Source: Epithemia pelagica (Eukaryota > Protista > Bacillariophyta). From it: a DNA stretch of 64,000 nucleotides. Below the pieces are notes generated by a model, which worked only from the letters and a program-made list of their open reading frames with translations, ran no database searches and had not been told where the DNA came from. A program made the position numbers and the translations under genes. Below are positions 21,501 through 43,268 of the stretch, one piece after another (within the stretch, counting starts at the first letter, position 1; each line of letters starts with the position of its first letter). The stretch lies in contig OX337228.1 in the NCBI GenBank assembly GCA_946965045.2, positions 248,001-312,000 on the forward strand. Reading direction: 5' to 3'.

Positions 21501-23700
21501 TCGTCATATTCGTCCACCACGACGTCTAATTGAAGAGTATCAATGTGCTGGGATCAACTATAATGAGTTATCCCTTACACAGTCGGAGATCAACTACTAT
21601 TCCTCCATGGCCGAACTAGGCCACGAAGACTCAGACTTCAGTGAGCAGCCTGAATCCTACGACTCACATGACCACCATGACTCAAGCGACGATGATTCAA
21701 GTAGCTACGAGGAGATCCAAGAGGAATCGAACCTTGACCATCACTCCGACATCAGTGCAGCCTTTCTTCATGCCGACCTTGTGACCGACATTCGCAATGC
21801 GTACCAACAAGTGCCTCTTGACCCCGAATACCAAGCTCCTGAATTCCCTGTTGATTGTGAAGCATCTGGCTTGAGCCCCAACTCATCACCGTTTGCCCGA
21901 GAATGTGCACTCGTCGGTGCAGGATTGGGCGGAGGAATTCAAAACACCCGAGAGCTCCATGTTTTGACATACGAGGAAGCCATCAATGGACCCGAGCGTG
22001 ATCAGTGGCTTGAGTCCATTGAACAAGAATATCAAAGGATGATCGCCAATGGTGTCTTTATCCCCTGTGATCCTGCCGAAGTCCCAGCTGATGCCAAGAT
22101 TCTTACCAATGTGTGGGCCATGAAAAAGAAAGCAAGTGGTGCGTTTCGCGCACGATTAAATGCCCGAGGATACGAACAGGTCGATGGGGAGCACTATGAC
22201 AGTCATGCCACGTTTGCTCCAGTGGCCTCCGAAATGACCATTATGATCATTTTTGTCTTGATCATATTAGCGAATTGGGTAGTCCATGTCATGGACGTCA
22301 AGGGCGCATTTCTGCTTGGCGACTTCGAAAAGGATCGGAAGATGTGGATGACCATTCCGAAAGGAATGGAGTCCAAATATCCTCCTGGTTGGTTGATCTT
22401 CCTTGGCAAGACTCTTTATGGCACAAAGCAAGCCGCTCGTGCCTTTTGGAATAAGGTCCAGGAAGTCATGAAGCTTATCCACTTCTTGCGCAACCGTGCT
22501 GATCCATGCCTCTACTTCGCATGGACTGCATTCGGCCTCGTCATTTGGCTCTCGTGGGTGGATGATTTCTTGGTCTGTGGGTCCGAAGCAGGCGTCCTTC
22601 ACTCCAAAGCAGCTATGAAGGAACACTTCGACTGCGACGATTGTGGTGAATTGACCGAGTATATCGGTTGTAAGGTTGATCTCGACCGCGAACAGCGCAC
22701 GTGTAAGTTCTCGCAGCCCGTCTTGCTGCAGAGCTTTTCCGACGAGTTTGATGTGCCTTCCACAGCGCAGAAGTATGCTACACCTGCAGCTCCTGGTGAA
22801 GTTCTCAAGAAGGACGATGGCACGGATGATTTGAACGCAACACAGCAGTCCATGTATCGGAGCGGCGTCGGTAAATTGTTGCATCTCATGAAATGGTCAC
22901 GTCCCGACATTTTGAACTCGGTCCGCGAACTCTCCAAATTCATGAAACAAGGTACTCAGCATCATCTCAAAGCCATGTATCGGGTGATGCGTTACTGCAT
23001 TGATACTCCATCGTGCAGCAAGATTCTGCGCCCGGTTGGTTGTTGGGACGGTACCAAGGAAGGATTTGAGTTTGTCATTCGAGGCCGAAGTGATTCCGAC
23101 TTTGCCAAAGACCCCGACAAGCGTCACAGTGTCTCAGGAATATCTGTTTTTCTCCAAGACGCGCCAATTTCCGAGTCCAGTCGGATGCAAGATTGCGTTA
23201 CTCTTTCCGTTAGCGAAGCCGAAATTGTCGCTGCTGTGGAAACAGGCCAACGCATGCTTTTCGGTATGCGCGTCCTCGAACAGATGGGACTGACCGTGCA
23301 AAAACCAATGATCTTGCAGATGGATTGCAAAGGTGCCATTGCTCTGACACACTCGTGGAGCGTTGGTGGCCGCACTCGACACATCGATGTGAAATGGCAT
23401 TTTCTTCGTGAGATGAAGGAGGAAGGCATTATTCATACCGTTTGGCTGCACTCACCTGACAATTCTGCTGATCTGTTCACCAAGAACCTGCCTGGTCCAG
23501 ATTTCCGCAAGCATGTCTCTGTCTATTGCTCCAATCTTGATCCTGCTTGTAATGCCGACGACGATCCTGTCACTCCGACCACCAACAATCAAGGCGCTCA
23601 CGTTGAACCGCATCATGGATCCGAAACCGCCATGCTTGTTTACCAAGGTCCTCTTCCATTTTGGCTTAAATGCTTTCTTCACACACGATCATCCAAGTGA
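18568..23700 (+). CDS. gag-pol: Copia gag-pol polyprotein (1710 aa), uninterrupted
   Basis: Two CCHC knuckles (CNFCQEPGHGYYQC, CEDCKVYGHSTQRC); ADTGAT protease; HDKLGH/CAAC; RLDNAGEN and PQQNSLAE integrase; WVDD RT; SDSDFA/SEAE/RHIDVKWHF RNase H. Confidence 0.97.
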   Translation: MDLSSSDKTSTAIKVPTFSGKKADYPIWWMRFRSHARVHNFIGALSDAPEKELPSTEHESIDESTDSGKASKKALNRNAMAVACLSMALQADDDLKLVMKSITSDWPGGRAHIIVKGLFRNYKSENIAAKMRIRQDVNKISMSNTMNPKILRKKISQIENRHNHELADDDLVAIVIEKAAPIYSTIVATEQRAKGSALTADDLIDAMMTQWNLHHDEDDDGEDGTESSLDQSASGGLSLQVTQTNPVCQAVGDPNSVPPQPFVVCNFCQEPGHGYYQCPLRSQASQQGTGTALAVGPGQQQYQQQQGYRPYNGQQQGQWRQPYQQGDRPRPYCEDCKVYGHSTQRCWENPANAQFRPPNWTSRRNRPQQAPSPSPPTSTPAQDIATVVASNTTTRPTTPTTPNGQSTPSSETRVEMLMSGIEFPHDLQLLRDPNIWIADTGATQHMTSHTRGIINLRRPEDPVSLVMANDTTESATVIGDLPGICCNKYGCELRSGQMSGVNILPSAAFNLFSISKMLKQGWSLSGSSEAIIITKGSMSVTFDIVIPTPDGMIFCLYFKRKQELTDHEIFGALPDIGPKKRQTMSLQDAHDKLGHIDIRKIKPIVEHLGFQLQSGEMEKCAACAAGKARRKNLPRSDTHANSEPEDPNINRIYLDMSSVRPIKSHPTPRKNQWRMIVHGRTQLKFSAFYESKKAMVEPTCEFLHRWESNGLGATHVRLDNAGENILLQSRSQSADWKLNLNFEFTARNTPQQNSLAEVAISTIAMRGRAMMHRANVPMEYRSLLWTTAFDTATLLDGLVVIELDGVSKTRYEHWSGQLPRFAHHLRTWGEAGTVKTATDTTQKLEDKGTHCIFVGYCRDHAGDVYRMFNPHTKKLHVTRDVIWLRRMYFLPPENPPHLMITPLLPPNSDCDSTLHLEGADDASNRSKPFIEEIEDDSPNQNIEDTPMVETIDQATDADENVSAITSATPRQHQVTRTGRHIRPPRRLIEEYQCAGINYNELSLTQSEINYYSSMAELGHEDSDFSEQPESYDSHDHHDSSDDDSSSYEEIQEESNLDHHSDISAAFLHADLVTDIRNAYQQVPLDPEYQAPEFPVDCEASGLSPNSSPFARECALVGAGLGGGIQNTRELHVLTYEEAINGPERDQWLESIEQEYQRMIANGVFIPCDPAEVPADAKILTNVWAMKKKASGAFRARLNARGYEQVDGEHYDSHATFAPVASEMTIMIIFVLIILANWVVHVMDVKGAFLLGDFEKDRKMWMTIPKGMESKYPPGWLIFLGKTLYGTKQAARAFWNKVQEVMKLIHFLRNRADPCLYFAWTAFGLVIWLSWVDDFLVCGSEAGVLHSKAAMKEHFDCDDCGELTEYIGCKVDLDREQRTCKFSQPVLLQSFSDEFDVPSTAQKYATPAAPGEVLKKDDGTDDLNATQQSMYRSGVGKLLHLMKWSRPDILNSVRELSKFMKQGTQHHLKAMYRVMRYCIDTPSCSKILRPVGCWDGTKEGFEFVIRGRSDSDFAKDPDKRHSVSGISVFLQDAPISESSRMQDCVTLSVSEAEIVAAVETGQRMLFGMRVLEQMGLTVQKPMILQMDCKGAIALTHSWSVGGRTRHIDVKWHFLREMKEEGIIHTVWLHSPDNSADLFTKNLPGPDFRKHVSVYCSNLDPACNADDDPVTPTTNNQGAHVEPHHGSETAMLVYQGPLPFWLKCFLHTRSSK

Positions 23701-23999
23701 CTCAGCCCCAACAGAAATCCAGTACACCACAGTGAAACGCCCATTGCCGAACACACATCAAAATTCAAGCAAACACCACTATCATCAGTCAGAAATCAAA
23801 ATCAGCAAATCGAATCCAAATCACATCAACATTTATCACTTACACATCATCACGAACATCCGAATCAGGCAGGGCATCACTTTCATCATTCCAAATACAC
23901 TCACACCATGCACACAAGACGATCTTTCAGAGTTTATGACATCAAGGACACTGAAGAATTTGGTTTCTATGGACATTCGAGCGACACAATTAGGCAGGG

Positions 24000-24278
24000 T
24001 GTTGGAATCTTCAATTGAGTCGCTCTTCATGTCGTGGTCCCGAATCAAGTCAGTCGCACAACGAGACATTGGGATGCAAACCGCATGGGAGGCGGTTATA
24101 GTTCATCTAGGTCTTGGACCATCTCGATCTCATCTGGCATAACAACATCCTCATAATCCTAGTCGTAATGCTCACTCTTTCTAAATCACTCAGTTTCGAA
24201 ACCCTTTTGCATTACTTCTACGATTACCTTGCTTCTGTGCACAGAGGAGACCATCAGGGCCAATCTAGTGATCCAACA
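24000..24278 (+). repeat. 3' LTR (279 bp)
   Basis: Identical by eye to 18068-18346; preceded by a weak PPT AGGCAGGG. Confidence 0.97.
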
Positions 24279-24283
24279 GTCGA

Positions 24284-24617
24284 CTCCGACTCCGGCGATT
24301 TGACGACGAAGATGGTTTGGGCGAATGATTAGAGGACGACGATACTTTGGTGCTGCCTTTGCCCGTTCTGGTGGATCGCGATCGGGATCGCGTGGCTCGA
24401 CTCGTCGTGGTGGTACTGCCATTGTTGGTATAGTTCAGTTTGCTTGCCGAGTCCTGGTCCTGTTCTTCCTTTGCTTTTGTCGTTGTCTTTTTGTCTTGGG
24501 GTTGTCATCAAAATCGGCATCGTCGTACAAGGCATTATTTCGATACAAGGCCGACACTGGACCATCACCATCACCGACACCATTGGCCGTCGTTGTTGTC
24601 GTTTCGTTGGTTGTCAT
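24284..24617 (-). pseudogene. Duplicated, frameshifted 5' fragment of the coiled-coil gene (continues at 17980-18067 across the retroelement)
   Basis: MTTNETTTTTANGVGDGDGPVSALYRNNALYDDADFDD matches the N-terminus of 1573-3996, then shifts frame and stops. Confidence 0.85.
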
Positions 24618-24970
24618 GTTAGCCAGAATGATACCTGGAGTTACAGTCACGAACGTGGAGGCTGGATCAGGATGGTCAATCCGAGAAACAAAAAGAACAA
24701 ACCCAGCGAGACAGCAACTGCCAACAACCAAAGAAGACCCAAACAAACTCGAACTACACAAAGAAAGAGAGATGGTATTACCGGTAGCAGAACACCACAA
24801 CGAGACTCTCTCTTCTTCTTCAATCTCTCATGGGGCAAATAAAAAAGGGGTTCTCTGCCGTGATGGAACAGGAGCAAAGTTTTTGGGGGCCATTGTGTCT
24901 ATTTCGGGGTAGGGTAACTTTCTGGTGTGACGTGTCTTCGATTGGACACTAGACTCACGACCTCTTCCGA

Positions 24971-25142
24971 AGAGGGATACAGAGGGGTATTACCCCCATT
25001 AAATGGGGGAGAGGAAACATGACCCTCCGTCGAGCCAGCCAATCGTCCGTGGGCGCGCACAACGGACCGTTTGCTGGTCTGTCCGTTCTTTTACATCCAT
25101 CGAGAGCGTAGATGCAAAAGTTACTCCTAGGTGTATCCCTCT
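24971..25142. mobile_element. MITE-like element, copy 2 (172 bp)
   Basis: Perfect 11-bp terminal inverted repeat AGAGGGATACA / TGTATCCCTCT. TSD not clearly recoverable. Confidence 0.65.
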
Positions 25143-25384
25143 AATTTATTCAGTTTCGCCGCGCCAATTGCAACCATGCCACCAAGTCCTTTGCAGCGAA
25201 CGTGGAGCATCCTCCGGAAAACCCCAAGCTCCAGAAGCTAAGGTGGCTTACAATACTTGTCTTCCACTTGGACGGGTCGCGGGTCATCCAAGCAGGACAT
25301 CACCAACACAAGCCAACCGACCGACCAGCAAGACAGATGCAGAATATTAGAGGTAGGACACAAACAGAACAAAACAAAAGGAAA

Positions 25385-25511
25385 ATGGCTGCTGACCTCA
25401 ATGCCTACCTACAAGACACCCTCTTGATCAAAGAACATGTGGTCAGGTCGGCGCTCAACTCACATGGCCTGGAGTCATTTGCTGACTTGGAAGCGATCTC
25501 AGAGAACGACA
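25385..25511 (+). pseudogene. Truncated gag fragment, copy 2
   Basis: Same 42-codon fragment and same breakpoint as 4693-4819. Confidence 0.75.
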
Positions 25512-25728
25512 GCGTTGTGCGTCTTCCCCTCAAAAAGGAATACTTGAGCCTCCTCAAGTTGATCCTATCGATATTACCAACTATTGTATATCCGTAATAA
25601 GACAAAGAGAATGCTCAGCTTTACTCTCCTTCGTACTCTAGTGTGTTCCAGCGCAACACAAGTGGTCTTCTCACGGGCCGAAACGAGACGTTGGTAAATG
25701 TTGTCCAATAATCGGAATCACACAGAAT

Positions 25729-27749
25729 TCAAGAGTGAGAAATATTCTTTGGCATCAAAATGGCCATTTGCTTGTCGACAATGGCTTGCAACTTCTTATG
25801 CGTGGTTTCCTCTCGATGCTCTTCGAGTGATCCCAAGTCACTCAGAAATAATTCGCCTTTGGAATCTACGAGCACGTGTCGCCAGCGAATGTCGTCATTT
25901 TTATACCGATAGCCTTGTGTGGCAAATCGATACAATTCTTGTTTCACCTTTGTTTTGAATGAATCGCGACGCTTGACCTGCTTTCCATAGGGCATCACCA
26001 AACAAGGGCGTCCGCCCAGATCCACCGCATTGACATCAGGAAATCGATCCTTGTAGAGCTCTCCCCAACGGACAGCCTCCCCGTCTGCCATTTCTCGAAG
26101 TTTCTCAACCGTCCTGTTTTCCTCCTCTTCCCTTGCCGATTCGGTGGATTTTTGGGAAGGCTCAACATGAAAACACTTCAATGCGCAAACCCGGCAACTG
26201 GAATTGCAGCAAGAATCACCGATGCATGGCTTCCAACTCCCAGTTCACCCAAGAGGTAGAATATCTGCGACGAAGGAGGCGGAAATTGCATGCAATCGGC
26301 AGAGAACGGTTTCGTCGTATTCTTAATGCAGGAAGGTGTCTGGACCCAATCGTAGAAGTTCTTGCCAACCTTACAAACAACCCTTTTTCCGAGATACTCA
26401 CCATGGTCAATGTCTGGGATATCGGTAGCAACGTTGGACTGAACTTTTTGGAAAGCCATTTCAATGGCTTGAAGAAGAAAAGGAAAGACATATCCATTCT
26501 CAAATACTTGTGAGTAATAAACAACTGGGTCCACCTGTTTTTCTTTGTAAGCCTCCTTCTTAGTGTCATCGGCGTCTTTCAAGAACTTCGAGGCAGAAAA
26601 GGTCTCGCGAATTGGGCTAAAGGTCTGGTCTTTGCAATTTTCAGGAACTTTCTGCATTCTGGGAGGCGGCTTTTTGTTCGTAGAAAGTGTTGTCTTTACT
26701 TTTTCCAGAATCTCCTTATGCGCACTGTCATTGTCAAAACTCTCCAATGAAGCAAGAACCATCTTGTTGTACGTCATGACTGCCCCAAGGGGTTGCTGGA
26801 TGCCTGTGCTTCTCATTGCCAGCAAGTACGACCAGATCTGACCGGCCGTGTTCTCGGATGTAAAGACCTTATCGTTGTGGTTTCCATCTCGCGCATCCGG
26901 ACTCTTCACTTCAACGGCAAATAGTATCTTTCCCTTGATTCGGAGCACAACAACAATGTCCGGTTTCATCAAAAAAATTGAAATCTCCGTGTTCACACGA
27001 GCCTCAGCCAGGTTTAAACAGCCGAGAGCATCTTCAACCATGCTCACACACAACCGTTGAACCCCGAATTCGTTGGAGTAATCGAAATTATCTCCTTGTC
27101 GATATCGAGATCTTGAGGCTCCCAAGACACTTGGAATCAGTTTATTGTCGGCATTGTCGGTACAGACGGGAATGCGAACGTGAGATGGATGCACATAGTG
27201 TCCATTATGGACCAAAATCTTGGCCTTTGGTATTTTAAGATACCCATCGACACTTTCTCGTTTTTTCTTGTCATAATAATTTATTTTTCGGGAGTTTCCC
27301 GAGACACTGGGTGTCACGTTCTTGTTCAAGGTCAGACCAGGAAGCCTAAAGTTTTTCTTCGTATCAAGGTACGTTTGCTCGATGGACGTTTGACGAAGGT
27401 CTTCGGTTGCTGCCAATTCCTTATCTTTTTCTGCAATTGTCACTTCCAGTTGCAAGTTTCTTTGAATTATTTCATCGTTTCTTTGCATTATTTCATCGTT
27501 TCTTTGCATTATTTCATCGTTTCTTCGAATTATTTGATCCATTTTCATTGTCTCGCGCAATGTATATATCTTCAAACGTAGATTTTCTACTTCGTCAAGG
27601 ACGCCACGAATCTCACTAGTGAGCAACCCCCGTGTCTCTGCCGCGCTCCAAAGCTCTTGATACAGTTTCCGTTTCTTTGCCATCTCCTCCGCCTCGCCGT
27701 CGCTTGGGTAGTCTTTTTGCACGCGCTTTGCCCCATTTGTTTCGCTCAT
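25729..27749 (-). pseudogene. Nuclease-kinase gene copy 2, with a 1-bp deletion separating the kinase C-part
   Basis: GAATTGCAGCAAG at ~26209 versus GAATTGCAGGCAAG in copies 1 and 3. A real lesion or an assembly error. Confidence 0.8.
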
Positions 27750-28697
27750 AATGGTAGTTGTTCTTGTGCGAGTCGGATCGCAAGGCTCAACCTCCAACGT
27801 TTGCTGCTGCGGAGAAGAAGGTTGATGATGTGATAATTCTCTTCTGTACAAACACACGCACACACACACCACACACACATTTAGTGGGGTGGAGGCATCA
27901 GGCCAATGCTTACAAGCTGCCAATCCAATCTGGAGCGCCAATTGGCTAGAAAGGGGATGAGCTGCCGCGCCTACCCGCTAGCTAGGGTACGGTCGACCGA
28001 CTGCCCTGGCTCGGAATAGAAGTTACTCCGTATAACCTTACCAATCCAAAACAAGAACCCGCGCTGCCCCCCCCAAGACCCCCACCACTCCCCCCAAATG
28101 TACTTCGTACTAAATCTGTTTGAAAGAAAGACATGCCGTTTACTCTCATTAGAGTTAGGGGGACCGTTGTAGTCGAACGCCGGCCTGCCTAATTCGAAAC
28201 TCTACAGGCATATCTCTATTGTACACTTTTTTAGACGGATTGGGGACAGCCAATCCTGGATTGGCTGAATCCGGAAAGCCAAATACCCGGATGTGTGACG
28301 TAAAGATGACGTTCTATGATGACGCGTAACGCTCACGGATTGGATTGGCTACGTGTAAGCAATGGCCTCAGTCTCTCCGTATTGTGGATAGTATTGTAGT
28401 TTGTAGAGTGGTGAAGAAAAGAGGGGGAGGGCAGAGGTTTGGGGCAATTGGGGTGAAGAATCGATTTAGCAGCGAAACAGGCCGCCTTCCGTTTCGCGGC
28501 TCCAATGGCAACCATGCACCCGAAAGTCCTTTGCAGCGAACCAGTGAATGTGGAGCATTCTCCGGGTCCCCAAAAGCGCCAAAAGCGCCAGAAGCGTGGC
28601 TTACAATTGTCTTCCACAATGACGGGTGGGTCATCCAAGCAGCAGGACACCACCCACACAAGCCTACCGTTGATCACCGACCAAGACAGGAGTCGAA

Positions 28698-30890
28698 ATG
28701 AGTCCCAAAAAGTACGAGAATGAAGACCAGATGGTTCTTGAATATTTGAAGAAAAAAGGAATGCACAATGCTGTGGCCCAAGTCATGAATACTATAGCGG
28801 CGGAATCCAATGAATCATCTCAGAAGGTAGATGAGAAGGAATCGCATAGTCCGGGCGAAACGAACGCCCGAGAGCGATTTCTCCAAGAGGATGACGACAA
28901 GGCTCGAGCTGAATGGGGTATACCGGATACGGAGAACCTGCAGCGACGTTTCCACTCGCTTCCACCACCTACGGAGCCGCAGCAATGGATTGGTCGATCT
29001 TCGGCCGAACGAGTCGTCAGTGAAGTTGTGTTGCAAAATTTCCATCAACGATTATCGACGAATCATGCCGATTTCACATTCCTGGTCGCCTCGGGGCATG
29101 TCCGGAGTGGGAAGACTCGCACCGGAATGGAAACACCCCGAATCGTCCAGAATTTTTGCGAGGCAGAGCTCACTCGCAAAAATGTAAACACTGCAAAGCC
29201 AGTCTACCTCCGAATTGATTTCCTCAATGGTGCTCGATTTAACAGGCAGTTTGACTCCCCTTCTCGGTCCATCAGCGAGGCACTCGGGGCTCGTCTCATT
29301 TCGGCCTTTTATGAAACAAACGCGTTGCAGAACGGTGTGACTCACGATGTTGCGCTCCAGCACGTTGTCACGCACATTAGAAATACACACCCAGATCATA
29401 ATTTGATTGTCCCGATTGTGATCCACTTTGATGAGCATGGGGCTTTTATTGACGACATGAACAAGGTTGTCTCGAATCGCGGTCAACCTGGAAAGGACTA
29501 TTTTCTTGGTATGCTCCAGTTGATTGGATCTGCCGCAACAACAAATGAAGGATATCTCTCTGCCTATCACAAAATGGGTGCCTATTTTCTTGTTCCGATT
29601 ACGACAGGAACCTCTCATTCGGCTGCAAATTTTGATAGAGCGAGCCGCTACAAGATTTGGCCAGTCCCCCTACCTGTATTGACATTTGACGAATCCCTGT
29701 TGTTGGCAGAATCTTGTTTAGAAGTGACGGGCCTGGAGCCTGACGAGATTTGTACCACGTTGAACGACGCCATGTTCCGAATCGCGTTGGGTGACACGGG
29801 TGGGCTTCCGGGCCTCGTTTTCTTCTTATCGACTAGGAAGCTACGAGACCTATCATACGTGGAGCACCTACACAATCGAACCAAGTCTTACATTGCCGGA
29901 AATTGGAATCATCGGTGGGCAGCTATAACCTCAGTCTGCTTGGCACGACCGCGCGTGACAAATACAACGGTCCTCATGACAGAATACAAGCACCCAACTT
30001 TAGCAAGCGTCTTGTACGGCACGAGAGATGATTTTCTAAAAGTGCATCCAAGTTTAAATCCTGACATGGCTGCGATTGCCTACACTGTTCAAGACGCTTT
30101 GGATGGAGGGACAGTATTTTGGCAAGCGGATGGAGAAATCGGCCTAGCACCAGCTCTTCTTTCCAAATTCAATGGCGGAGAAGGAATGTTCAACCCAATC
30201 CTCACTCGACAAATATCGTCGTCACAAGAATGGACATGGCAATATTTTGAGTCGGCCCATTTGCTCTACCTTGCCGCGATCATGGCCGCTCTTGTGAAGG
30301 AAAGGAGACGTTTCAGCAACATTACACTTGGAACGCTTCTTCGAAGTTCGAGTCCCCGTGAGTCCAGTATCCTCTCTGAAGCGTTGCAGCTACCAGATAA
30401 TTTTAATGGCGGCAATGTCACAAAGGACGGAACGCAATGCATCCCAAGAAGCAATGCAAAGAAAGGAAGCCAAATGAAGGTTTCTCTCGACGATTTTGAA
30501 ACTGTACATCTGGCCATGGAAGGGACACCAATTGTCGACGGCTACCTTAATTTACGTCTTGGGGCAGCGTTATCATCGGACATTGCCACCAAGACATTGT
30601 TTATTCAATACAAGCACAACGGACTTGAGAGTCAATCATCCGCCGTACATATTTCACATATGAATCGCGAAGTCAACAAGCTGGCGGTCCGTCTGAATAA
30701 ACATGGATGGCCGCAGGGCCGAGGGTGGATCTTTCTGTGGGTCACAAACCGGAATGTTGTACAAGACTGTGTTCCAGATCAACGTCTTCTTTGGGTGGAC
30801 AAGACCTCGCTCTCGAAACATGCCCCTTTGCTAGGAACTCGAGGCTTGGTGCCCTTGCAACAGCTACGGGACGTGGATCACAAGGAATGA
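28698..30890 (+). CDS. P-loop NTPase + C-terminal PD-(D/E)xK-like nuclease, copy 2 (730 aa, intact)
   Basis: Walker A GHVRSGKT after a hydrophobic strand (FTFLVAS); Walker B IVIHFDEHG; C-terminal PIVDGYL...LFIQYK followed by WIFLWVTNR. Confidence 0.8.
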   Translation: MSPKKYENEDQMVLEYLKKKGMHNAVAQVMNTIAAESNESSQKVDEKESHSPGETNARERFLQEDDDKARAEWGIPDTENLQRRFHSLPPPTEPQQWIGRSSAERVVSEVVLQNFHQRLSTNHADFTFLVASGHVRSGKTRTGMETPRIVQNFCEAELTRKNVNTAKPVYLRIDFLNGARFNRQFDSPSRSISEALGARLISAFYETNALQNGVTHDVALQHVVTHIRNTHPDHNLIVPIVIHFDEHGAFIDDMNKVVSNRGQPGKDYFLGMLQLIGSAATTNEGYLSAYHKMGAYFLVPITTGTSHSAANFDRASRYKIWPVPLPVLTFDESLLLAESCLEVTGLEPDEICTTLNDAMFRIALGDTGGLPGLVFFLSTRKLRDLSYVEHLHNRTKSYIAGNWNHRWAAITSVCLARPRVTNTTVLMTEYKHPTLASVLYGTRDDFLKVHPSLNPDMAAIAYTVQDALDGGTVFWQADGEIGLAPALLSKFNGGEGMFNPILTRQISSSQEWTWQYFESAHLLYLAAIMAALVKERRRFSNITLGTLLRSSSPRESSILSEALQLPDNFNGGNVTKDGTQCIPRSNAKKGSQMKVSLDDFETVHLAMEGTPIVDGYLNLRLGAALSSDIATKTLFIQYKHNGLESQSSAVHISHMNREVNKLAVRLNKHGWPQGRGWIFLWVTNRNVVQDCVPDQRLLWVDKTSLSKHAPLLGTRGLVPLQQLRDVDHKE

Positions 30891-30931
30891 AATCAATCGC
30901 TTGGAGATTAAATCTATCTGGTTTGCTCCCC

Positions 30932-31353
30932 ACTGAGATTGTCCTTGTTGTCTTTCAAGTGCCCCAAGTGTCGTTGCGACAATTGTTTTATGGATCCAGC
31001 TTCCCGACGAGACGGTCGACTCCGACTCCGGCGATTTGACGACGAAGATGGTTTGGGCGAATGATTAGAGGACGACGATACTTTGGTGCTGCCTTTGCCC
31101 GTTCTGGTGGATCGCGATCGGGATCGCGTGGCTCGACTCGTCGTGGTGGTACTGCCATTGTTGGTATAGTTCAGTTTGCTTGCCGAGTCCTGGTCCTGTT
31201 CTTCCTTTGCTTTTGTCGTTGTCTTTTTGTCTTGGGGTTGTCATCAAAATCGGCATCGTCGTACAAGGCATTATTTCGATACAAGGCCGACACTGGACCA
31301 TCACCATCACCGACACCATTGGCCGTCGTTGTTGTCGTTTCGTTGGTTGTCAT
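30932..31353 (-). pseudogene. Duplicated, frameshifted 5' fragment of the coiled-coil gene, unit 3
   Basis: Same as the unit 2 fragment, without the retroelement. Confidence 0.85.
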
Positions 31354-31706
31354 GTTAGCCAGAATGATACCTGGAGTTACAGTCACGAACGTGGAGGCTG
31401 GATCAGGATGGTCAATCCGAGAAACAAAAAGAACAAACCCAGCGAGACAGCAACTGCCAACAACCAAAGAAGACCCAAACAAACTCGAACTACACAAAGA
31501 AAGAGAGATGGTATTACCGGTAGCAGAACACCACAACGAGACTCTCTCTTCTTCTTCAATCTCTCATGGGGCAAATAAAAAAGGGGTTCTCTGCCGTGAT
31601 GGAACAGGAGCAAAGTTTTTGGGGGCCATTGTGTCTATTTCGGGGTAGGGTAACTTTCTGGTGTGACGTGTCTTCGATTGGACACTAGACTCACGACCTC
31701 TTCCGA

Positions 31707-31878
31707 AGAGGGATACAGAGGGGTATTACCCCCATTAAATGGGGGAGAGGAAACATGACCCTCCGTCGAGCCAGCCAATCGTCCGTGGGCGCGCACAACG
31801 GACCGTTTGCTGGTCTGTCCGTTCTTTTACATCCATCGAGAGCGTAGATGCAAAAGTTACTCCTAGGTGTATCCCTCT
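31707..31878. mobile_element. MITE-like element, copy 3
   Basis: Same 11-bp TIRs; identical by eye to 24971-25142. Confidence 0.65.
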
Positions 31879-32120
31879 AATTTATTCAGTTTCGCCGCGC
31901 CAATTGCAACCATGCCACCAAGTCCTTTGCAGCGAACGTGGAGCATCCTCCGGAAAACCCCAAGCTCCAGAAGCTAAGGTGGCTTACAATACTTGTCTTC
32001 CACTTGGACGGGTCGCGGGTCATCCAAGCAGGACATCACCAACACAAGCCAACCGACCGACCAGCAAGACAGATGCAGAATATTAGAGGTAGGACACAAA
32101 CAGAACAAAACAAAAGGAAA

Positions 32121-32247
32121 ATGGCTGCTGACCTCAATGCCTACCTACAAGACACCCTCTTGATCAAAGAACATGTGGTCAGGTCGGCGCTCAACTCACA
32201 TGGCCTGGAGTCATTTGCTGACTTGGAAGCGATCTCAGAGAACGACA
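32121..32247 (+). pseudogene. Truncated gag fragment, copy 3
   Basis: Same fragment and breakpoint as copies 1 and 2. Confidence 0.75.
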
Positions 32248-32464
32248 GCGTTGTGCGTCTTCCCCTCAAAAAGGAATACTTGAGCCTCCTCAAGTTGATC
32301 CTATCGATATTACCAACTATTGTATATCCGTAATAAGACAAAGAGAATGCTCAGCTTTACTCTCCTTCGTACTCTAGTGTGTTCCAGCGCAACACAAGTG
32401 GTCTTCTCACGGGCCGAAACGAGACGTTGGTAAATGTTGTCCAATAATCGGAATCACACAGAAT

Positions 32465-34486
32465 TCAAGAGTGAGAAATATTCTTTGGCATCAAAATGGC
32501 CATTTGCTTGTCGACAATGGCTTGCAACTTCTTATGCGTGGTTTCCTCTCGATGCTCTTCGAGTGATCCCAAGTCACTCAGAAATAATTCGCCTTTGGAA
32601 TCTACGAGCACGTGTCGCCAGCGAATGTCGTCATTTTTATACCGATAGCCTTGTGTGGCAAATCGATACAATTCTTGTTTCACCTTTGTTTTGAATGAAT
32701 CGCGACGCTTGACCTGCTTTCCATAGGGCATCACCAAACAAGGGCGTCCGCCCAGATCCACCGCATTGACATCAGGAAATCGATCCTTGTAGAGCTCTCC
32801 CCAACGGACAGCCTCCCCGTCTGCCATTTCTCGAAGTTTCTCAACCGTCCTGTTTTCCTCCTCTTCCCTTGCCGATTCGGTGGATTTTTGGGAAGGCTCA
32901 ACATGAAAACACTTCAATGCGCAAACCCGGCAACTGGAATTGCAGGCAAGAATCACCGATGCATGGCTTCCAACTCCCAGTTCACCCAAGAGGTAGAATA
33001 TCTGCGACGAAGGAGGCGGAAATTGCATGCAATCGGCAGAGAACGGTTTCGTCGTATTCTTAATGCAGGAAGGTGTCTGGACCCAATCGTAGAAGTTCTT
33101 GCCAACCTTACAAACAACCCTTTTTCCGAGATACTCACCATGGTCAATGTCTGGGATATCGGTAGCAACGTTGGACTGAACTTTTTGGAAAGCCATTTCA
33201 ATGGCTTGAAGAAGAAAAGGAAAGACATATCCATTCTCAAATACTTGTGAGTAATAAACAACTGGGTCCACCTGTTTTTCTTTGTAAGCCTCCTTCTTAG
33301 TGTCATCGGCGTCTTTCAAGAACTTCGAGGCAGAAAAGGTCTCGCGAATTGGGCTAAAGGTCTGGTCTTTGCAATTTTCAGGAACTTTCTGCATTCTGGG
33401 AGGCGGCTTTTTGTTCGTAGAAAGTGTTGTCTTTACTTTTTCCAGAATCTCCTTATGCGCACTGTCATTGTCAAAACTCTCCAATGAAGCAAGAACCATC
33501 TTGTTGTACGTCATGACTGCCCCAAGGGGTTGCTGGATGCCTGTGCTTCTCATTGCCAGCAAGTACGACCAGATCTGACCGGCCGTGTTCTCGGATGTAA
33601 AGACCTTATCGTTGTGGTTTCCATCTCGCGCATCCGGACTCTTCACTTCAACGGCAAATAGTATCTTTCCCTTGATTCGGAGCACAACAACAATGTCCGG
33701 TTTCATCAAAAAAATTGAAATCTCCGTGTTCACACGAGCCTCAGCCAGGTTTAAACAGCCGAGAGCATCTTCAACCATGCTCACACACAACCGTTGAACC
33801 CCGAATTCGTTGGAGTAATCGAAATTATCTCCTTGTCGATATCGAGATCTTGAGGCTCCCAAGACACTTGGAATCAGTTTATTGTCGGCATTGTCGGTAC
33901 AGACGGGAATGCGAACGTGAGATGGATGCACATAGTGTCCATTATGGACCAAAATCTTGGCCTTTGGTATTTTAAGATACCCATCGACACTTTCTCGTTT
34001 TTTCTTGTCATAATAATTTATTTTTCGGGAGTTTCCCGAGACACTGGGTGTCACGTTCTTGTTCAAGGTCAGACCAGGAAGCCTAAAGTTTTTCTTCGTA
34101 TCAAGGTACGTTTGCTCGATGGACGTTTGACGAAGGTCTTCGGTTGCTGCCAATTCCTTATCTTTTTCTGCAATTGTCACTTCCAGTTGCAAGTTTCTTT
34201 GAATTATTTCATCGTTTCTTTGCATTATTTCATCGTTTCTTTGCATTATTTCATCGTTTCTTCGAATTATTTGATCCATTTTCATTGTCTCGCGCAATGT
34301 ATATATCTTCAAACGTAGATTTTCTACTTCGTCAAGGACGCCACGAATCTCACTAGTGAGCAACCCCCGTGTCTCTGCCGCGCTCCAAAGCTCTTGATAC
34401 AGTTTCCGTTTCTTTGCCATCTCCTCCGCCTCGCCGTCGCTTGGGTAGTCTTTTTGCACGCGCTTTGCCCCATTTGTTTCGCTCAT
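32465..34486 (-). CDS. Coiled-coil + PD-(D/E)xK nuclease + kinase-like protein, copy 3 (673 aa, intact, SDLG)
   Basis: Same motifs as copy 1; open frame from ATG 34486; retains Asp at the DFG-equivalent position. Confidence 0.82.
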   Translation of the reverse strand: MSETNGAKRVQKDYPSDGEAEEMAKKRKLYQELWSAAETRGLLTSEIRGVLDEVENLRLKIYTLRETMKMDQIIRRNDEIMQRNDEIMQRNDEIIQRNLQLEVTIAEKDKELAATEDLRQTSIEQTYLDTKKNFRLPGLTLNKNVTPSVSGNSRKINYYDKKKRESVDGYLKIPKAKILVHNGHYVHPSHVRIPVCTDNADNKLIPSVLGASRSRYRQGDNFDYSNEFGVQRLCVSMVEDALGCLNLAEARVNTEISIFLMKPDIVVVLRIKGKILFAVEVKSPDARDGNHNDKVFTSENTAGQIWSYLLAMRSTGIQQPLGAVMTYNKMVLASLESFDNDSAHKEILEKVKTTLSTNKKPPPRMQKVPENCKDQTFSPIRETFSASKFLKDADDTKKEAYKEKQVDPVVYYSQVFENGYVFPFLLQAIEMAFQKVQSNVATDIPDIDHGEYLGKRVVCKVGKNFYDWVQTPSCIKNTTKPFSADCMQFPPPSSQIFYLLGELGVGSHASVILACNSSCRVCALKCFHVEPSQKSTESAREEEENRTVEKLREMADGEAVRWGELYKDRFPDVNAVDLGGRPCLVMPYGKQVKRRDSFKTKVKQELYRFATQGYRYKNDDIRWRHVLVDSKGELFLSDLGSLEEHREETTHKKLQAIVDKQMAILMPKNISHS

Positions 34487-35422
34487 AATGGTAGTTGTTC
34501 TTGTGCGAGTCGGATCGCAAGGCTCAACCTCCAACGTTTGCTGCTGCGGAGAAGAAGGTTGATGATGTGATAATTCTCTTCTGTACAAACACACGCACAC
34601 ACACACCACACACACATTTAGTGGGGTGGAGGCATCAGGCCAATGCTTACAAGCTGCCAATCCAATCTGGAGCGCCAATTGGCTAGAAAGGGGATGAGCT
34701 GCCGCGCCTACCCGCTAGCTAGGGTACGGTCGACCGACTGCCCTGGCTCGGAATAGAAGTTACTCCGTATAACCTTACCAATCCAAAACAAGAACCCGCG
34801 CTGCCCCCCCCAAGACCCCCACCACTCCCCCCAAATGTACTTCGTACTAAATCTGTTTGAAAGAAAGACATGCCGTTTACTCTCATTAGAGTTAGGGGGA
34901 CCGTTGTAGTCGAACGCCGGCCTGCCTAATTCGAAACTCTACAGGCATATCTCTATTGTACACTTTTTTAGACGGATTGGGGACAGCCAATCCTGGATTG
35001 GCTGAATCCGGAAAGCCAAATACCCGGATGTGTGACGTAAAGATGACGTTCTATGATGACGCGTAACGCTCACGGATTGGAGTAAGCAATGGCCTCAGTC
35101 TCTCCGTATTGTGGATAGTATTGTAGTTTGTAGAGTGGTGAAGAAAAGGGGGAGGGCAGAAGTTTGGGGCAATTGGGGTGAAGAATCGATTTAGCAGCGA
35201 AACAGGCCGCCTTCCGTTTCGCGGCTCCAATGGCAACCATGCACCCGAAAGTCCTTTGCAGCGAACCAGTGAATGTGGAGCATTCTCCGGGTCCCCAAAA
35301 GCGCCAAAAGCGCCAGAAGCGTGGCTTACAATTGTCTTCCACAATGACGGGTGGGTCATCCAAGCAGCAGGACACCACCCACACAAGCCTACCGTTGATC
35401 ACCGACCAAGACAGGAGTCGAA

Positions 35423-37639
35423 ATGAGTCCCCAAAAGTACGAGAATAAAGACCAGATGGTTCTTGAATCTTTGAAGCAAAATCTTGAATATTTGAAGAAA
35501 AAAGGAATGCACAATGCTGTGGCCCAAGTCATGAATACTATAGCGGCGGAATCCAAAGAATCATCGCAGAAGGAAATAGATGAGAAGGAATCGCATAGTC
35601 CGGGCGAAACGAATGCCCGAGAGCGATTTCTCCAAGAGGATGACGACAAGGCTCGAGCTGAATGGGGTATACCGGATACGGAGAACCTGCAGCGACGGTT
35701 CCACTCGCTTCCACCACCTACGGAGCCGCAGCAATGGATTGGTCGATCTTCGGCCGAACGAGTCGTCAGTGAAGTTGTGTTGCAAAATTTCCATCAACGA
35801 TTATCGACGAATCATGCCGATTTCACATTCCTGGTCGCCTCGGGGCATGTCCGGAGTGGGAAGACTCGCACCGGAATGGAAACACCCCGAATCGTCCAGA
35901 ATTTTTGCGAGGCAGAGCTCACTCGCAAAAATGTAAACACTGCAAAGCCAGTCTACCTCCGAATTGATTTCCTCAATGGTGCTCGATTTAATAGGCAGTT
36001 TGACTCCCCTTCTCGGTCCATCAGCGAGGCACTCGGGGCTCGTCTCATTTCGGCCTTTTATGAAAAAATCGCGTTGCAGAACGGTGTGACTCACGATGTT
36101 GCGCTCCAGCACATTGTCACGCACATTAGAAATACTCACCCAGATCGTAATTTGATTGTCCCGATTGTGATCCACTTTGATGAGCATGGGGCTTTTATTG
36201 ACGACATGAACAAGGTTGTCTCGAATCGCGGTCAACCTGGAAAGGACTATTTTCTTGGTATGCTCCAGTTGATTGGATCTGCCGCAACAACAAATGAAGG
36301 ATATCTCTCTGCCTATCACAAAATGGGTGCCTATTTTCTTGTTCCGATTACGACAGGAACCTCTCATTCGGCTGCAAATTTTGATAGAGCGAGCCGCTAC
36401 AAGATTTGGCCAGTCCCCCTACCTGTATTGACATTTGACGAATCCCTGTTGTTGGCAGAATCTTGTTTGGAAGTGACGGGCCTGGAGCCTGACGAGATTT
36501 GTACCACGTTGAACGACGCCATGTTCCGAATCGCGTTGGGTGACACGGGTGGGCTTCCGGGCCTCGTTTTCTTCTTATCGACTAGGAAGCTACGAGACCT
36601 ATCATACGTGGAGCACCTACACAATCGAACCAAGTCTTACATTGCCGGAAATTGGAATCATCGGTGGGCAGCTATAACCTCAGTCTGCTTGGCACGACCG
36701 CGCGTGACAAATACAACGGTCCTCATGACAGAATACAAGCACCCAACTTTAGCAAGCGTCTTGTACGGCACGAGAGATGATTTTCTAAAAGTGCATCCAA
36801 GTTTAAATCCTGACATGGCTGCGATTGCCTACACTGTTCAAGACGCTTTGGATGGAGGGACAGTATTTTGGCAAGCGGATGGAGAAATCGGCCTAGCACC
36901 AGCTCTTCTTTCCAAATTCAATGGCGGAGAAGGAATGTTCAACCCAATCCTCACTCGACAAATATCGTCGTCACAAGAATGGACATGGCAATATTTTGAG
37001 TCGGCCCATTTGCTCTACCTTGCCGCGATCATGGCCGCTCTTGTCAAGGAAAGGAGACGTTTCAGCAACATTACGCTTGGAACGCTTCTTCGAAGTTCGA
37101 GTCCCCGTGAGTCCAGTATCCTCTCTGAAGCGTTGCAGCTACCAGCAAAATTTGATGGCGGAAAATTCACAAGGGACGCAACGCAATGCATCCCAAGAAT
37201 GAATGCAAAGAAAGGAAGCCAAATTAAGGTTTCTCTCGACGATTTCGAAACTGTACATCTGGCCATGGAAGGGACACCAATTGTCGACGGCTACCTTAAT
37301 TTACGTCTTGGGGCAGCGTCATCATCGGACATTGCCACCAAGACATTGTTTATTCAATACAAGCACAGCGGACTTGAGAGTCAATCATCCGCCGTACATA
37401 TTTCACATATGAATCACGAAGTCAACAAGCTGGCTGTCCGTCTGAATAAACATGGATGGCCGCAGGACCGAGGGTGGATCTTTCTGTGGGTCACAAACCG
37501 GGATGTTGTACAAGACTGTGTTCCAGATCAACGTCTTCTTTGGGTGGACAAGACCTCGCTCTCGAAACATGCCCCTTTGCTAGGAACTCGAGGCTTGGTG
37601 CCCTTGGAACAGCTACGGGAGGTGGATCACAAGGAATGA
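35423..37639 (+). CDS. P-loop NTPase + PD-(D/E)xK-like nuclease, copy 3 (738 aa, intact)
   Basis: Same motifs as 28698-30890, with a variant segment PAKFDGGKFTRDATQCIPRMN. Confidence 0.8.
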   Translation: MSPQKYENKDQMVLESLKQNLEYLKKKGMHNAVAQVMNTIAAESKESSQKEIDEKESHSPGETNARERFLQEDDDKARAEWGIPDTENLQRRFHSLPPPTEPQQWIGRSSAERVVSEVVLQNFHQRLSTNHADFTFLVASGHVRSGKTRTGMETPRIVQNFCEAELTRKNVNTAKPVYLRIDFLNGARFNRQFDSPSRSISEALGARLISAFYEKIALQNGVTHDVALQHIVTHIRNTHPDRNLIVPIVIHFDEHGAFIDDMNKVVSNRGQPGKDYFLGMLQLIGSAATTNEGYLSAYHKMGAYFLVPITTGTSHSAANFDRASRYKIWPVPLPVLTFDESLLLAESCLEVTGLEPDEICTTLNDAMFRIALGDTGGLPGLVFFLSTRKLRDLSYVEHLHNRTKSYIAGNWNHRWAAITSVCLARPRVTNTTVLMTEYKHPTLASVLYGTRDDFLKVHPSLNPDMAAIAYTVQDALDGGTVFWQADGEIGLAPALLSKFNGGEGMFNPILTRQISSSQEWTWQYFESAHLLYLAAIMAALVKERRRFSNITLGTLLRSSSPRESSILSEALQLPAKFDGGKFTRDATQCIPRMNAKKGSQIKVSLDDFETVHLAMEGTPIVDGYLNLRLGAASSSDIATKTLFIQYKHSGLESQSSAVHISHMNHEVNKLAVRLNKHGWPQDRGWIFLWVTNRDVVQDCVPDQRLLWVDKTSLSKHAPLLGTRGLVPLEQLREVDHKE

Positions 37640-37988
37640 AATCAATCGCTTGGAGATTAAATCTATCTGGTTTGGGTTTGTCCCGCAATGGAACCATTAT
37701 ATATACAATGGACATTGATAGCTTGAGCCAGGCGTTTGCGGATACTTGGAGCCGTGGAAAGTGGAACTATGGGAGAACGAGAGAGGCAAAGATTGGCAAG
37801 AGAGCACGGTGGCACTCGAAACGGTCTCGACGATAGATGCCAATGGAAAGGATCTTTATATAGAGTTCTATCCTATACTTCCAAGGACACAAGGAGGGAT
37901 GGACGACAGAGAGTGAGAAGGAATTGGGATTGTTCTAGTACCTGTTTTGGTTTTCTTGTGTTTGTTGCCTGGTGTGGTTTGTATTGTA

Positions 37989-38283
37989 TTAGGACGTGGC
38001 ACACGCACGACCACTAATACTCCCACTAATACTGGGACTGACTTGGCGAACCGAACATTGTCCCAACACGGGTGTCTGTGTCTGATGGTGATGATGATCA
38101 TGAGTGGTGGTTGTAGTCAAGGCGACGGTAGTTGTGGTCCTGGTCGTTGGTGTGGCACTCGCATCGTTGGGGGTGCTGTTGGTGGTTCCTCGTTCGCTTT
38201 CCGGTGGTGTGGTGGTGGCGGTGGAGGAGGAGGTACTCCTAGTATTAGTGCTAGGTGCATTGTCGGGACTCTTGTGGTGGGGG
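37989..38283 (-). pseudogene. Duplicated 3' end of the E2F/DEL gene
   Basis: 37640-38283 matches 50248-50888, including the E2F stop codon and C-terminal codons. It ends abruptly at the MITE terminus. Confidence 0.9.
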
Positions 38284-38284
38284 A

Positions 38285-38456
38285 AGAGGGATACAGAGGG
38301 GTATTACCCCCATTAAATGGGGGAGAGGAAACATGACCGTCCATCGAGCCAGCCAATCGTCCGTGGGCGCGCACAACGGACCGTTTGCTGGTCTGTCCGC
38401 TCTTTTACATCCATCGAGAGCGTAGATGCAAAAGTTACTCCTAAGTGTATCCCTCT
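38285..38456. mobile_element. MITE-like element, copy 4
   Basis: Same 11-bp TIRs. Confidence 0.65.
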
Positions 38457-39431
38457 AATTTATTCAGTTTCGCCGCGCCTATTGCAACCATGCCACCAAG
38501 AAGGGCGTAGGAGAGGTCAGAGAAAAAGGGGTAGGAAGAAAAGATTCCAGGGAAGGCGAAAGCAGAAAGCCGTTGGTAGTAGAGCGGCGAAGAACAGGGG
38601 GAGGGAGGAAACTTTCGGGGCAGTGGGTGAAAAAGAAAGAGATCGATAGAGAAGATCAAAGCTGTACTCCTACTGGGTAGGAGTAGAAAGTAGGAAGGCA
38701 TTCGTAAGGTTAGTATATGTAGTGTGCATGATGAAGGAAACACTACGTAAATTGTACAGCTACCTACTCCAAATTACTCCTAGGAGTACCTTGTAGAGTT
38801 GCTCATTTTTTCTGTCTAAGCTATCATTAATAAAGTCCACATAGGCAGCACTTCGTATCCCAAGTCGCACGCATGCACCACTTTCATGCCGTCGCGACCA
38901 TCTCAGAAACCCAAAAACTCACTATAAGCCAAACAGTGGAAAGAGTTTTTGGTTAAATAACAGGGTCGTTTGGCATCAAATTTCACTCTTGAGCATCTCT
39001 TCTCCATTGGAAGCCCAAAACGGAGTCCATATCATGTATGTAACTCTGATGTAAGTATGCAAAAACTTTCTTCTATGTATCCAAATTGGATCCCCGACCT
39101 TGCATCAGAGTTACAATATTGTTTTTCATGCCCGTAAGTCCAACTGAAACTGCCTCCAAATTATGAGGAAAAAACCCATGTCACGCTCGGCTTCCGTCCG
39201 AGATGGCATACTCACAATATTAATATTTCTACGTCTACGAATGTAGTATTACACAGTAGTTGCATGTTAATCGACAATTCCAAACTCTCCCTTCGACTCA
39301 ATGAGATTGGGCCTCTCTCATCTTTTACAAGACGTCTCTTTATTTTGTAATGACCCGATTGACACATCCATCCAATCAATCGTCCCACTTTATCATAACG
39401 AGCCTCACGGTTTGATTGTGTCGACAGAGCC

Positions 39432-42400: not shown

Positions 42401-43268
42401 GCAATGTATCAATTCTGAGATACTTGGAACTGGAAATCTCGCGTTCCAATTCCAGATTCCGTTTGAAGATACAACAAAGACCATCGGTGTGGTTCAGATG
42501 AGCAATGTCCAGATACGTCGTATGATTGCCGACATCGAGAAACTTGTGGACAAGTGCATTGTCGATGAGGATGACGTATTCTTATGGAAGAGGGCCATGC
42601 AACACTACTCAGCCTCGTTCCAACTGCTGAGAATCAGGGAACCAATGACGAACAACCAAATATTTGAGTACCAAAAACATGCGGATCTGTTCTATCGTGA
42701 TTGGATTGAGTTATATGGGGACGATGGAATTACAAATTACGCACACTACATTGGTAGTGGGCATATCGGGGAATATCTCTTACACTGGCGCAACCTCACG
42801 AACCATTCCCAGCAAGGCTGGGAAGCGTTCAACTCCGCGTTTAAGAGCTTCTATTTCAATAGAACCCAAGGCGGAGGAGCAGTGAACAGAGGGCAAGGGG
42901 CTCGATCAAGGTTACGTCCCATGGTGCGATGGATCCAACGCCACATGGTTTTCATGCTGGGCTATGACCTGGAAACCATGCGAGCTGAAATGGATGCCAG
43001 GACGCCAGAGGAGGAAGAAAAGTTCAAAACTTGGGTGAGAGACAACGGTGGAACGATCGAATTTGGGCAGCTAGTTCGACACAACAAGACAGCCAATGAC
43101 AAATCCAAGGATGAAGAAGATGAAGATGAGGATGGGGTAAAGGAATATGAGTTCGACTGGGATGTGGGAGTGGAGATTCTCTATGATCCTCGCTTGGATG
43201 ATTCAAATGATCTCGATGCAGACTCAGAAGACTCGACAACTACTGAGGAAGAGTACGAATCAGAGTAG
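39432..43268 (+). pseudogene. RAG1/Transib-like (CCHH-type) DDE transposase, disrupted
   Basis: STMDG (41398), KADMS (41641), CAKC (41704-41715), PCILHMD (42253), GITNYAH..GH (42729-42764), SQQGWEAFN (E at 42822). Inferred lesions: TGA at 39738, ACCG duplication at 39999-40006, A7 run at 42368-42374. Confidence 0.7.

Follow-up and report, generated by a model that had tools for sequence, protein, structure and literature searches.

We describe a tandem array of two divergent genes, here called A and B, in a 64,000-nucleotide stretch of the genome of the diatom Epithemia pelagica (GenBank assembly GCA_946965045.2, contig OX337228.1, positions 248,001 to 312,000 of the forward strand). This whole stretch is referred to below as the window, and positions given without a contig name are counted from its first nucleotide. 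The array is probably a young tandem segmental duplication, already in decay, that holds two independent nuclease genes, each regulated by nucleoside triphosphates (NTPs), in a transposon-rich region.

Self-BLAST and a repeat finder identify a 6.74-kb unit in head-to-tail repetition, with three full units and the remnant of a fourth, and the array as a whole extends over positions 3496-50888 of the window (∼3.5-50.9 kb). We number the full units 0, 1 and 2, and the remnant is unit 3. The segments 24276-30925 and 31012-37674 are 98.9% identical over 6.7 kb, with a period of 6736-6749 bp, and the units are 98.4-98.9% identical. Unit 0 lies upstream and is broken into pieces, of which 4614-7705 is 98.4% identical to 32040-35117, 8326-8885 corresponds to 35125-35697, and 15909-18067 corresponds to the B gene and the unit end. 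Each unit has two long, uninterrupted and intronless open reading frames (ORFs), A on the minus strand and B on the plus strand, in a divergent, head-to-head arrangement (Table 1). The two ATG codons are separated by 936 bp in unit 2 and by 947 bp in unit 1; the corresponding distance of 1,555 bp in unit 0 includes a 620-bp insert. A preliminary description of this DNA had reported a co-amplified, head-to-head pair of intronless genes with an intergenic region of ∼0.9 kb, and this is confirmed by the spacings in units 1 and 2. The repeat that it placed at 24284-37675 is real, but that interval covers only two of the units. It was also correct in finding a single unit with both genes intact, which is its “unit 3” and our unit 2. 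As for the partial copies that it listed, the one at 48278-50247 stands, while the one at 751-1222 reduces to an A-like fragment of only 75% identity at 836-1167.

The structure of the array speaks for ordinary duplication. The junction between units 2 and 3, which is of a second type, repeats the sequence 50283-50888; this sequence flanks the last B copy and overlaps the 3′ end of the E2F/DP family gene that lies directly downstream of the array. Since the copied sequence thus reaches into a host gene, the breakpoints of the duplicated block are arbitrary and lie in flanking host DNA. A junction of this kind is characteristic of plain segmental duplication and of unequal exchange, and it lends no support to the earlier proposal that the nucleases promote their own amplification. 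Similarity between the units is a mosaic: the A genes of units 1 and 2 are identical except for 1 bp, a deletion in unit 1, and the C-termini of B fall into two pairs, one from units 0 and 1 and the other from units 2 and 3. Such a mosaic fits unequal exchange combined with gene conversion. The two genes have also decayed independently of each other. Unit 0 has an open A beside a destroyed B, unit 1 has an intact B beside a frameshifted A, and in unit 3 only residues 82-738 of B are left, fused to a repeat ORF.

Structure prediction and sequence comparison support a predicted architecture for A that consists of a coiled coil, a PD-(D/E)xK nuclease that bears a QxxxY motif, and a kinase of the minimal RIO/OspG-like kind. 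In the AlphaFold model (predicted local distance difference test (pLDDT) score, 70), the coiled coil occupies residues 17-127 at the N-terminus and probably serves in dimerization. The nuclease domain follows at residues ∼220-340, with the topology alpha-beta-beta-beta-alpha-beta and the residues E227, E255, D264 and E280-x-K282, then Q304xxxY308. Its best fold match is the nuclease domain of BpuSI (Z 12.1; root-mean-square deviation 2.8 Å over 145 residues), and there is a weak match to Cas4 (E 5e-4). A disordered linker (residues 366-402) precedes the kinase, which spans residues 495-670 and contains G504xG506, K525, E558, D620, H625 and D638. The kinase matches OspG (Z 10.9) and RIO2 (Z 10-11; E 8e-6 by Foldseek) by fold, and the A-family profile matches Archaeoglobus Rio2 by sequence (E 5.7e-5). 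Four of these residues (D264, K282, K525 and E558) are invariant across the A family. In addition, A matches the Pfam family DUF5898 with 49.5 bits (cut-off 28.9), as do all 19 of the A paralogues that were scanned, and DUF5898 is listed within the Pfam PKinase clan (PMC9758233). The assignment of A to a nuclease joined to a kinase, made in the preliminary description, agrees with these fold matches, the DUF5898 match and the catalytic residues.

Gene B has no Pfam match, either as a whole or in parts, even at E values up to 10, and a sequence profile of the B family gives only P-loop-level matches in the PDB. The model of B (pLDDT 81.6) begins with a helical N-terminus (residues 8-80), which is followed at residues 87-504 by an AAA+ ATPase and a winged helix (to residue ∼500). 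The closest folds for this core are archaeal ORC/Cdc6 (ORC2, Z 13.9) and the archaeal Walker ATPases 2qen and 2fna (Z ∼12), and fold scores with TnsC, NLRs and Avs3 are lower than with ORC/Cdc6 (Avs3, Z 10.8; ZAR1, Z 12.6). The Walker A (G141-T148) and Walker B (D253-E254) residues are conserved in 18 diatom homologues. The same is true of the C-terminal residues D622...Q645-x-K647, which belong to a domain with an alpha-beta-beta-beta-alpha-beta core. On the basis of this motif and the predicted topology, the C-terminal domain is a probable PD-(D/E)xK nuclease-like domain. Lists from fold searches with whole B are filled by matches to the ATPase domain, and the topology of the C-terminal domain is taken from the model only. 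One B homologue has a weak TnsA-like match (E 0.07), and the B C-terminus has language-model feature similarities of 0.83-0.92 to unnamed and RHSP clusters, which we regard as a weak hint. No sensor repeat domain (LRR, TPR or WD40) was seen in the B model or by Pfam. The earlier view of B as a P-loop NTPase is therefore upheld by its AAA+, ORC-like fold, and the nuclease that it assigned to the same protein is probable.

The preliminary description had pointed to the two typical C-terminal architectures of Crinkler/RHS-type effectors (Zhang et al. 2016), and the resemblance of A and B to the two commonest Crinkler C-terminal architectures is real. According to the review PMC5289972, which confirms what the preliminary description said of that work, the combination of NTPase, helix-turn-helix (HTH) and restriction endonuclease (REase) accounts for more than one quarter of Crinkler C-termini, and REase plus kinase for approximately one sixth. 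B has the same order as the NTPase-HTH-REase module of Crinklers and as trypanosome RHS proteins, i.e., P-loop AAA+, winged helix and PD-(D/E)xK-like domain, and it belongs to a family that is likewise expanded and fast-evolving. Residues 75-731 of B superpose on a Mucoromycota cluster named “Crinkler family protein” (TM score 0.60 in both directions, 567 residues), in which 45% of the members bear the Pfam Crinkler header, and the language-model feature similarity to this same cluster is 0.95. B differs from Crinklers in that it has a helical N-terminus in place of a ubiquitin-like (Ubl) header, is without a signal peptide, comes from a free-living diatom, has Q rather than E/D as its third motif residue, and is without a Pfam sequence match. 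For A, the likeness is to the REase-kinase module (CRN8 type) and is at the level of architecture, in which a protein-kinase-like domain comes after a PD-(D/E)xK nuclease. Unlike CRN8-type proteins, A is headerless, and its kinase is of the minimal RIO/OspG-like kind (DUF5898) rather than full-size; no structural match of the whole body of A to any Crinkler cluster was recovered.

The Pfam Crinkler Ubl header (LxLFLAK motif; PF20147) has no match in A, in B, or in 38 B-family members, and no signal peptide is visible at the N-terminus of A or B. The sole PF20147 match in the whole genome is marginal (C6:3199530-3199682, minus strand; 26.4 bits over positions 9-54 of 106, in a 606-aa ORF) and lies away from all A and B matches. 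The earlier statement that the pair has no obvious header or signal peptide thus stands, with one qualification: both proteins start with long helical or coiled-coil segments, and since some Crinkler (CR) headers are alpha-helical (PMC5289972), A or B may have a helical header of a non-Ubl type.

B can also be compared with two other groups of ATPases. Its AAA+/winged-helix core aligns with the prokaryotic “archaeal ATPase” proteins (Pfam ATPase_2; 2qen and 2fna) at Z ∼12, and these are often joined to nuclease domains of the Hjc or Mrr type; a feature search with B gives prokaryotic clusters that join ATPase_2 to Hjc or Mrr_cat, at 0.87. B differs from them in being eukaryotic, in its extra helical N-terminus, and in a similarity that is undetectable by Pfam. 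The STAND/NLR ATPases with nuclease effectors (bacterial Avs3 and plant NLRs) have a similar ATPase fold with a nuclease attached. They differ from B, which has no repeat-type sensor, scores higher with the ORC/Cdc6 type, and has its probable nuclease domain at the C-terminus.

Whether A and B belong together was examined through their occurrence elsewhere. The closest protein relatives are from raphid pennate diatoms (Bacillariaceae, Cylindrotheca, Nitzschia and Seminavis). In profile hidden Markov model searches of this genome and of other diatoms, A and B did not co-occur at any of 12 other B-family and 26 other A-family loci. Within this genome there are approximately four other B loci, including a pseudogene on contig C9 (75-81% identity) and copies on C11 and C2 (∼38%), and none of the four has an A gene beside it. 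The A family is much larger here: a protein search gives 54 matches, Pfam DUF5898 gives 45, and no B gene is near these other A loci; this includes the closest A paralogues (63-71% identity), which are at C1:556-601 kb and C7:2.99 Mb. Elsewhere among diatoms, the B homologues in Cylindrotheca, on a 37-kb metagenome contig and on a 444-kb contig have unrelated neighbors, as does one that lies beside a cullin gene. The A homologues of Nitzschia inconspicua, Seminavis robusta and three metagenome contigs likewise stand without B. A homologue search with residues 215-673 of A gave 27 matches. A metagenome scan with B yielded three loci at which the upstream flank is too short for linkage to be read, and scans of viral contigs with the A and B families found no relatives. 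On the 37-kb metagenome contig, which is of diatom origin, the divergent neighbor of the B homologue is a gene on the minus strand (contig positions 7965-9260) with the catalytic domain of a type VI secretion system Tle1-like phospholipase/lipase (E 6e-31).

On present evidence, A and B are therefore not supported as a fixed two-gene system. The preliminary description had taken them to be a fixed, co-regulated module and had suggested a search of other diatom genomes for the conserved divergent pair. At the loci searched here the two were never found together, and the module claim fails against the 12 B loci without A, the 26 A loci without B, and the independent loss of copies within the array.

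The pattern of substitutions is consistent with two families that evolve rapidly. Between units 0 and 2, A differs by 19 nonsynonymous changes and one synonymous change (P = 0.05), mostly in the coiled coil, with one change (D638G) in the kinase. B differs between units 1 and 2 in 34 codons, ten of which fall within residues 575-601, just before the probable nuclease core, and nine of these ten changes are nonsynonymous (positions 37136-37225 and 30402-30482). This stretch of B was picked after the data had been seen, so that its very small P value is only descriptive. Residues 575-601 are also variable among diatom homologues. Gene conversion from the C9 pseudogene was considered as the source of this hot spot and rejected, because C9 carries a third variant. 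Among the A paralogues, those at C1:556-583 kb (63-64% identity) have the substitutions E280L, D620Y and D638G, and with the nuclease glutamate and both kinase aspartates replaced, they look doubly inactive, in nuclease and kinase alike. Such a pattern of divergence is typical of conflict-related families.

In the explanation that we favor, the duplicated segment happened to hold two unrelated neighbors in head-to-head orientation, each of which would come from its own lineage-expanded family of intracellular, NTP-regulated “conflict” nucleases. Each protein would act alone inside the cell as a regulated DNA-cutting enzyme. For B, ATP-dependent assembly on nucleic acid by means of the AAA+ and winged-helix domains would license the nuclease. 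The kinase of A would keep its nuclease in check or adjust it, as has been proposed for the Crinkler REase-kinase proteins and shown genetically for SPOK. The role of these enzymes would likely be defense against invading or selfish DNA, or else selfish behavior of the genes themselves. The array would have arisen, and been reshaped, by unequal crossing-over and gene conversion and not by the activity of its own genes.

Several points weigh against this explanation. The enzymatic activities of A and B are predicted, the A model is of moderate quality (see above), and the nuclease fold of B is assigned by motif and topology only, with Q replacing E/D before the lysine. The head-to-head arrangement around a shared putative promoter region of ∼0.94 kb, copied as a block, has the look of a co-regulated pair. 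Moreover, both genes are nuclease-bearing and of the conflict type, and a young, lineage-specific partnership between them would look identical to what is seen here. A further point concerns transcription. Four sequencing runs of the same organism cover the stretch; all are stored as contigs, their kind is unrecorded, and they are possibly the runs from which the assembly was built. One of them (X3; 39 Mb of contigs, the longest 19.6 kb) has contigs that cover both ORFs at high word depth, and none over 34653-35014 of the intergenic region. This gap, like the amount of contigs, would suit an RNA library and fits divergent transcription of A and B, but it is only suggestive, because the kind of run is unrecorded and reads of near-identical copies are pooled. 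Depth in such contig-based runs gives neither copy number nor expression level. Members of the A family do occur in MMETSP transcriptomes of other diatoms.

Some of these points would also recommend A and B as a genuine two-gene system, either toxin plus regulator or sensor plus effector, with a shared bidirectional promoter and amplified for the dosage of the pair. In units 1 and 2 the head-to-head genes are separated by 936-947 bp, they are duplicated together, the X3 contigs leave the intergenic region uncovered between the two ORFs, and both proteins combine a nuclease with regulatory, NTP-using domains. We nevertheless consider such a system unlikely, because the two are not seen together at the 38 other loci of either family, the divergent neighbors of diatom B homologues are unrelated (a Tle1-like lipase and a cullin gene), each gene has been lost without the other within the array, and even the closest A paralogues lack B.

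A different possibility centers on A. Genes of the A family are often found in tandem arrays, and the partner varies. Of the 45 DUF5898 matches of this genome, 27 are within 50 kb of another. At C6:3356225-3481315 there are seven DUF5898 matches with identical scores, in ORFs of 494 aa, which form another tandem array with a spacing of 14-18 kb, except for a step of 46 kb before the last match. In Nitzschia inconspicua (GCA_019154785.2), an A homologue of 780-801 aa alternates head-to-head, at a distance of ∼0.87 kb, with a gene of 684 aa; the period of this array is ∼6.45 kb, and at least 3-4 units are present on each of JAGRRH010000031 and JAGRRH010000011. The 684-aa partner is not B, and has only a weak stretch that resembles an integrase zinc-binding (H2C2) domain.

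The SPOK proteins of Podospora (Vogan et al. 2019, PMC6660238) have the same domain order as A, i.e., a coiled coil, a PD-(D/E)xK nuclease with QxxxY, a disordered linker, and a eukaryotic-like kinase. Killing by SPOK3 depends on the lysine of its nuclease, whereas resistance depends on its kinase (PMC6660238). SPOK and A are also alike in being multi-copy, fast-evolving and associated with mobile DNA, and both have a kinase catalytic aspartate (in A, D620 and D638). They differ in that the cysteine cluster that precedes the kinase in SPOK is absent from A (no conserved Cys/His cluster is present in residues 403-495 of A or in the A-family alignment), and A gave no match to the N-terminal domain of SPOK. 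In the space of language-model features, residues 215-673 of A have a neighbor cluster at 0.91 in which 44% of the members carry SPOK2_N, which we treat as a lead only.

A could accordingly be imagined as a SPOK-like selfish gene, or as otherwise self-propagating, with the arrays as a by-product of its spread or of the breaks that it makes; we consider this unlikely. The shared domain order with SPOK3, the feature neighbor, the clustering of DUF5898 matches and the different, integrase-like partner in N. inconspicua all point in this direction. So do the paralogues without nuclease and kinase catalytic residues, set beside a unit 0 copy that is without the DFG aspartate only, and the excess of nonsynonymous changes between units 0 and 2. 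The likeness consists of domain order and described features, however, with the cysteine cluster absent and the feature score only a lead. The breakpoints of the array resemble plain segmental duplication, tandem clustering is common in any fast-evolving family, and there is no genetic evidence of drive in diatoms. A more speculative extension, which we also think improbable, would make the DUF5898 nuclease-kinase genes the diatom counterpart of SPOK-type single-protein toxin-antidote elements, with the kinase restraining its own nuclease. In such a scheme they would be selfish killers or guards of an abortive-infection type, whose arrays with arbitrary neighbors record their spread, and B would be a hitch-hiker or a newly recruited partner.

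That the array is an assembly artefact, from collapsed or expanded haplotypes of a single-copy locus, is highly improbable: the units are 98-99% identical, and short-read contigs stop at every variant and so span no unit, but the units have private markers (two LTR retrotransposons with their own target-site duplications, the 620-bp insert, the 1-bp deletion, and indels of 21 bp and 3 bp), two different post-B junctions are present in read-derived contigs, and the contig is 6.98 Mb long in an assembly of 23 contigs (60.5 Mb). Both junction types are found in the short-read contigs of the four runs, with the loose end at 37674 continuing as the sequence after 30925. The array is thus not an obvious artefact of assembly.

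If duplication of two independent genes is the correct explanation, this locus clearly illustrates how two nuclease-bearing “conflict” families grow and erode in diatoms. Here, a free-living alga has both of the commonest Crinkler-type enzymatic bodies without headers, and for that reason they presumably act inside the cell. Members of both families are candidate factors in the innate immunity of diatoms to viruses and transposons, or candidate selfish genes, and the layout that A shares with SPOK leads to a testable hypothesis, namely that the nuclease is toxic and the kinase protective. In the searchable literature, neither family is described in diatoms, and DUF5898 is found in one paper, only as an entry in a list of kinase families. 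What is new here is that two known kinds of protein, the NTPase-REase body of the Crinkler type and the REase-kinase of DUF5898, have headerless members in a diatom.

Table 1. Positions of the A and B gene copies, the inter-unit and intergenic regions, the insertions and the flanking features in the window.
Feature	Position	Strand	Remarks
Gene A, unit 0	5037-7058	-	Intact 673-aa ORF; D638G in DFG-like motif
Gene A, unit 1	25729-27750	-	Frameshifted by 1-bp deletion at nucleotide 1541; ORFs 26178-27941 and 25729-26181
Gene A, unit 2	32465-34486	-	Intact, 673 aa (from first ATG)
Gene B, unit 0, first ∼93 codons	8614-8885	+	Cut by retrotransposon
Gene B, unit 0, remainder	15909-17938	+	Pseudogene, by virtue of one in-frame TAG and a frame change
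Gene B, unit 1	28698-30890	+	Intact, 730 aa
Gene B, unit 2	35423-37639	+	Intact, 738 aa
981-aa open frame, fusion of repeat ORF and B (unit 3)	47302-50247	+	B part 48275-50247, 99% identical to unit 2
Divergent intergenic region, unit 2	34487-35422	.	936 bp
Inter-unit spacer	31012-32464	.	3′ ends of B and A converge
Diverged copy of inter-unit spacer	3496-4626	.	Left edge of unit 0; 77-89% identity by sequence comparison
Unit 2/3 junction (second type)	37675-38282	.	Copy of 50283-50888, flank of last B copy
Spacer piece of unit 3 remnant	38283-38500	.	97.7% identical to 31705-31922
620-bp dispersed repeat	7706-8325	.	Between A and B of unit 0; at least 40 copies in the genome
Copia-type long terminal repeat (LTR) retrotransposon	8886-15908	+	Inside B of unit 0; RVT_2 ORF 10908-14759
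Copia-type LTR retrotransposon	18068-24278	+	Exactly at unit 0/unit 1 junction; 1710-aa gag-pol ORF
E2F/DP family gene	50595-52619	-	Directly downstream of array; two E2F_TDP domains, E 6e-32
Diverged A-like fragment, pseudogene remnant	836-1167	-	75% nucleotide identity to 33531-33872

Three transposon or repeat insertions interrupt the array (two Copia elements and the 620-bp repeat), and each of them marks an individual unit. The Copia element inside the B gene of unit 0 has LTRs of 170 bp that are 99% identical, TG..CA ends, and a 5-bp target-site duplication (CGACG). In the second element, the LTRs measure 279 bp and are 100% identical, and the duplicated target site (GTCGA) is present once in the uninterrupted junction at 31000-31040.

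The spacer between the units contains a piece of a high-copy repeat ORF (31917-32250), and also an ORF of 195 aa (31061-31648) that was considered as a third gene of the unit. It has no family match, and we do not count it because it is of low complexity and its frame is broken in the diverged spacer copy; it is probably no gene.

The remnant of unit 3 consists of three pieces (38283-38500, 47292-47632 and 48275-50888), and is split by ∼8.8 kb of foreign DNA (38501-47291). In the open frame of 981 aa at its right end, the first 324 aa come from a repeat ORF of ∼500 aa, which has more than 120 genomic matches and no Pfam match, and are joined in-frame to residues 82-738 of B. The foreign insertion itself contains an ORF of 866 aa (39901-42501) without a Pfam match, and a 261-bp unit in two tandem copies that are 99% identical (45256-45777).

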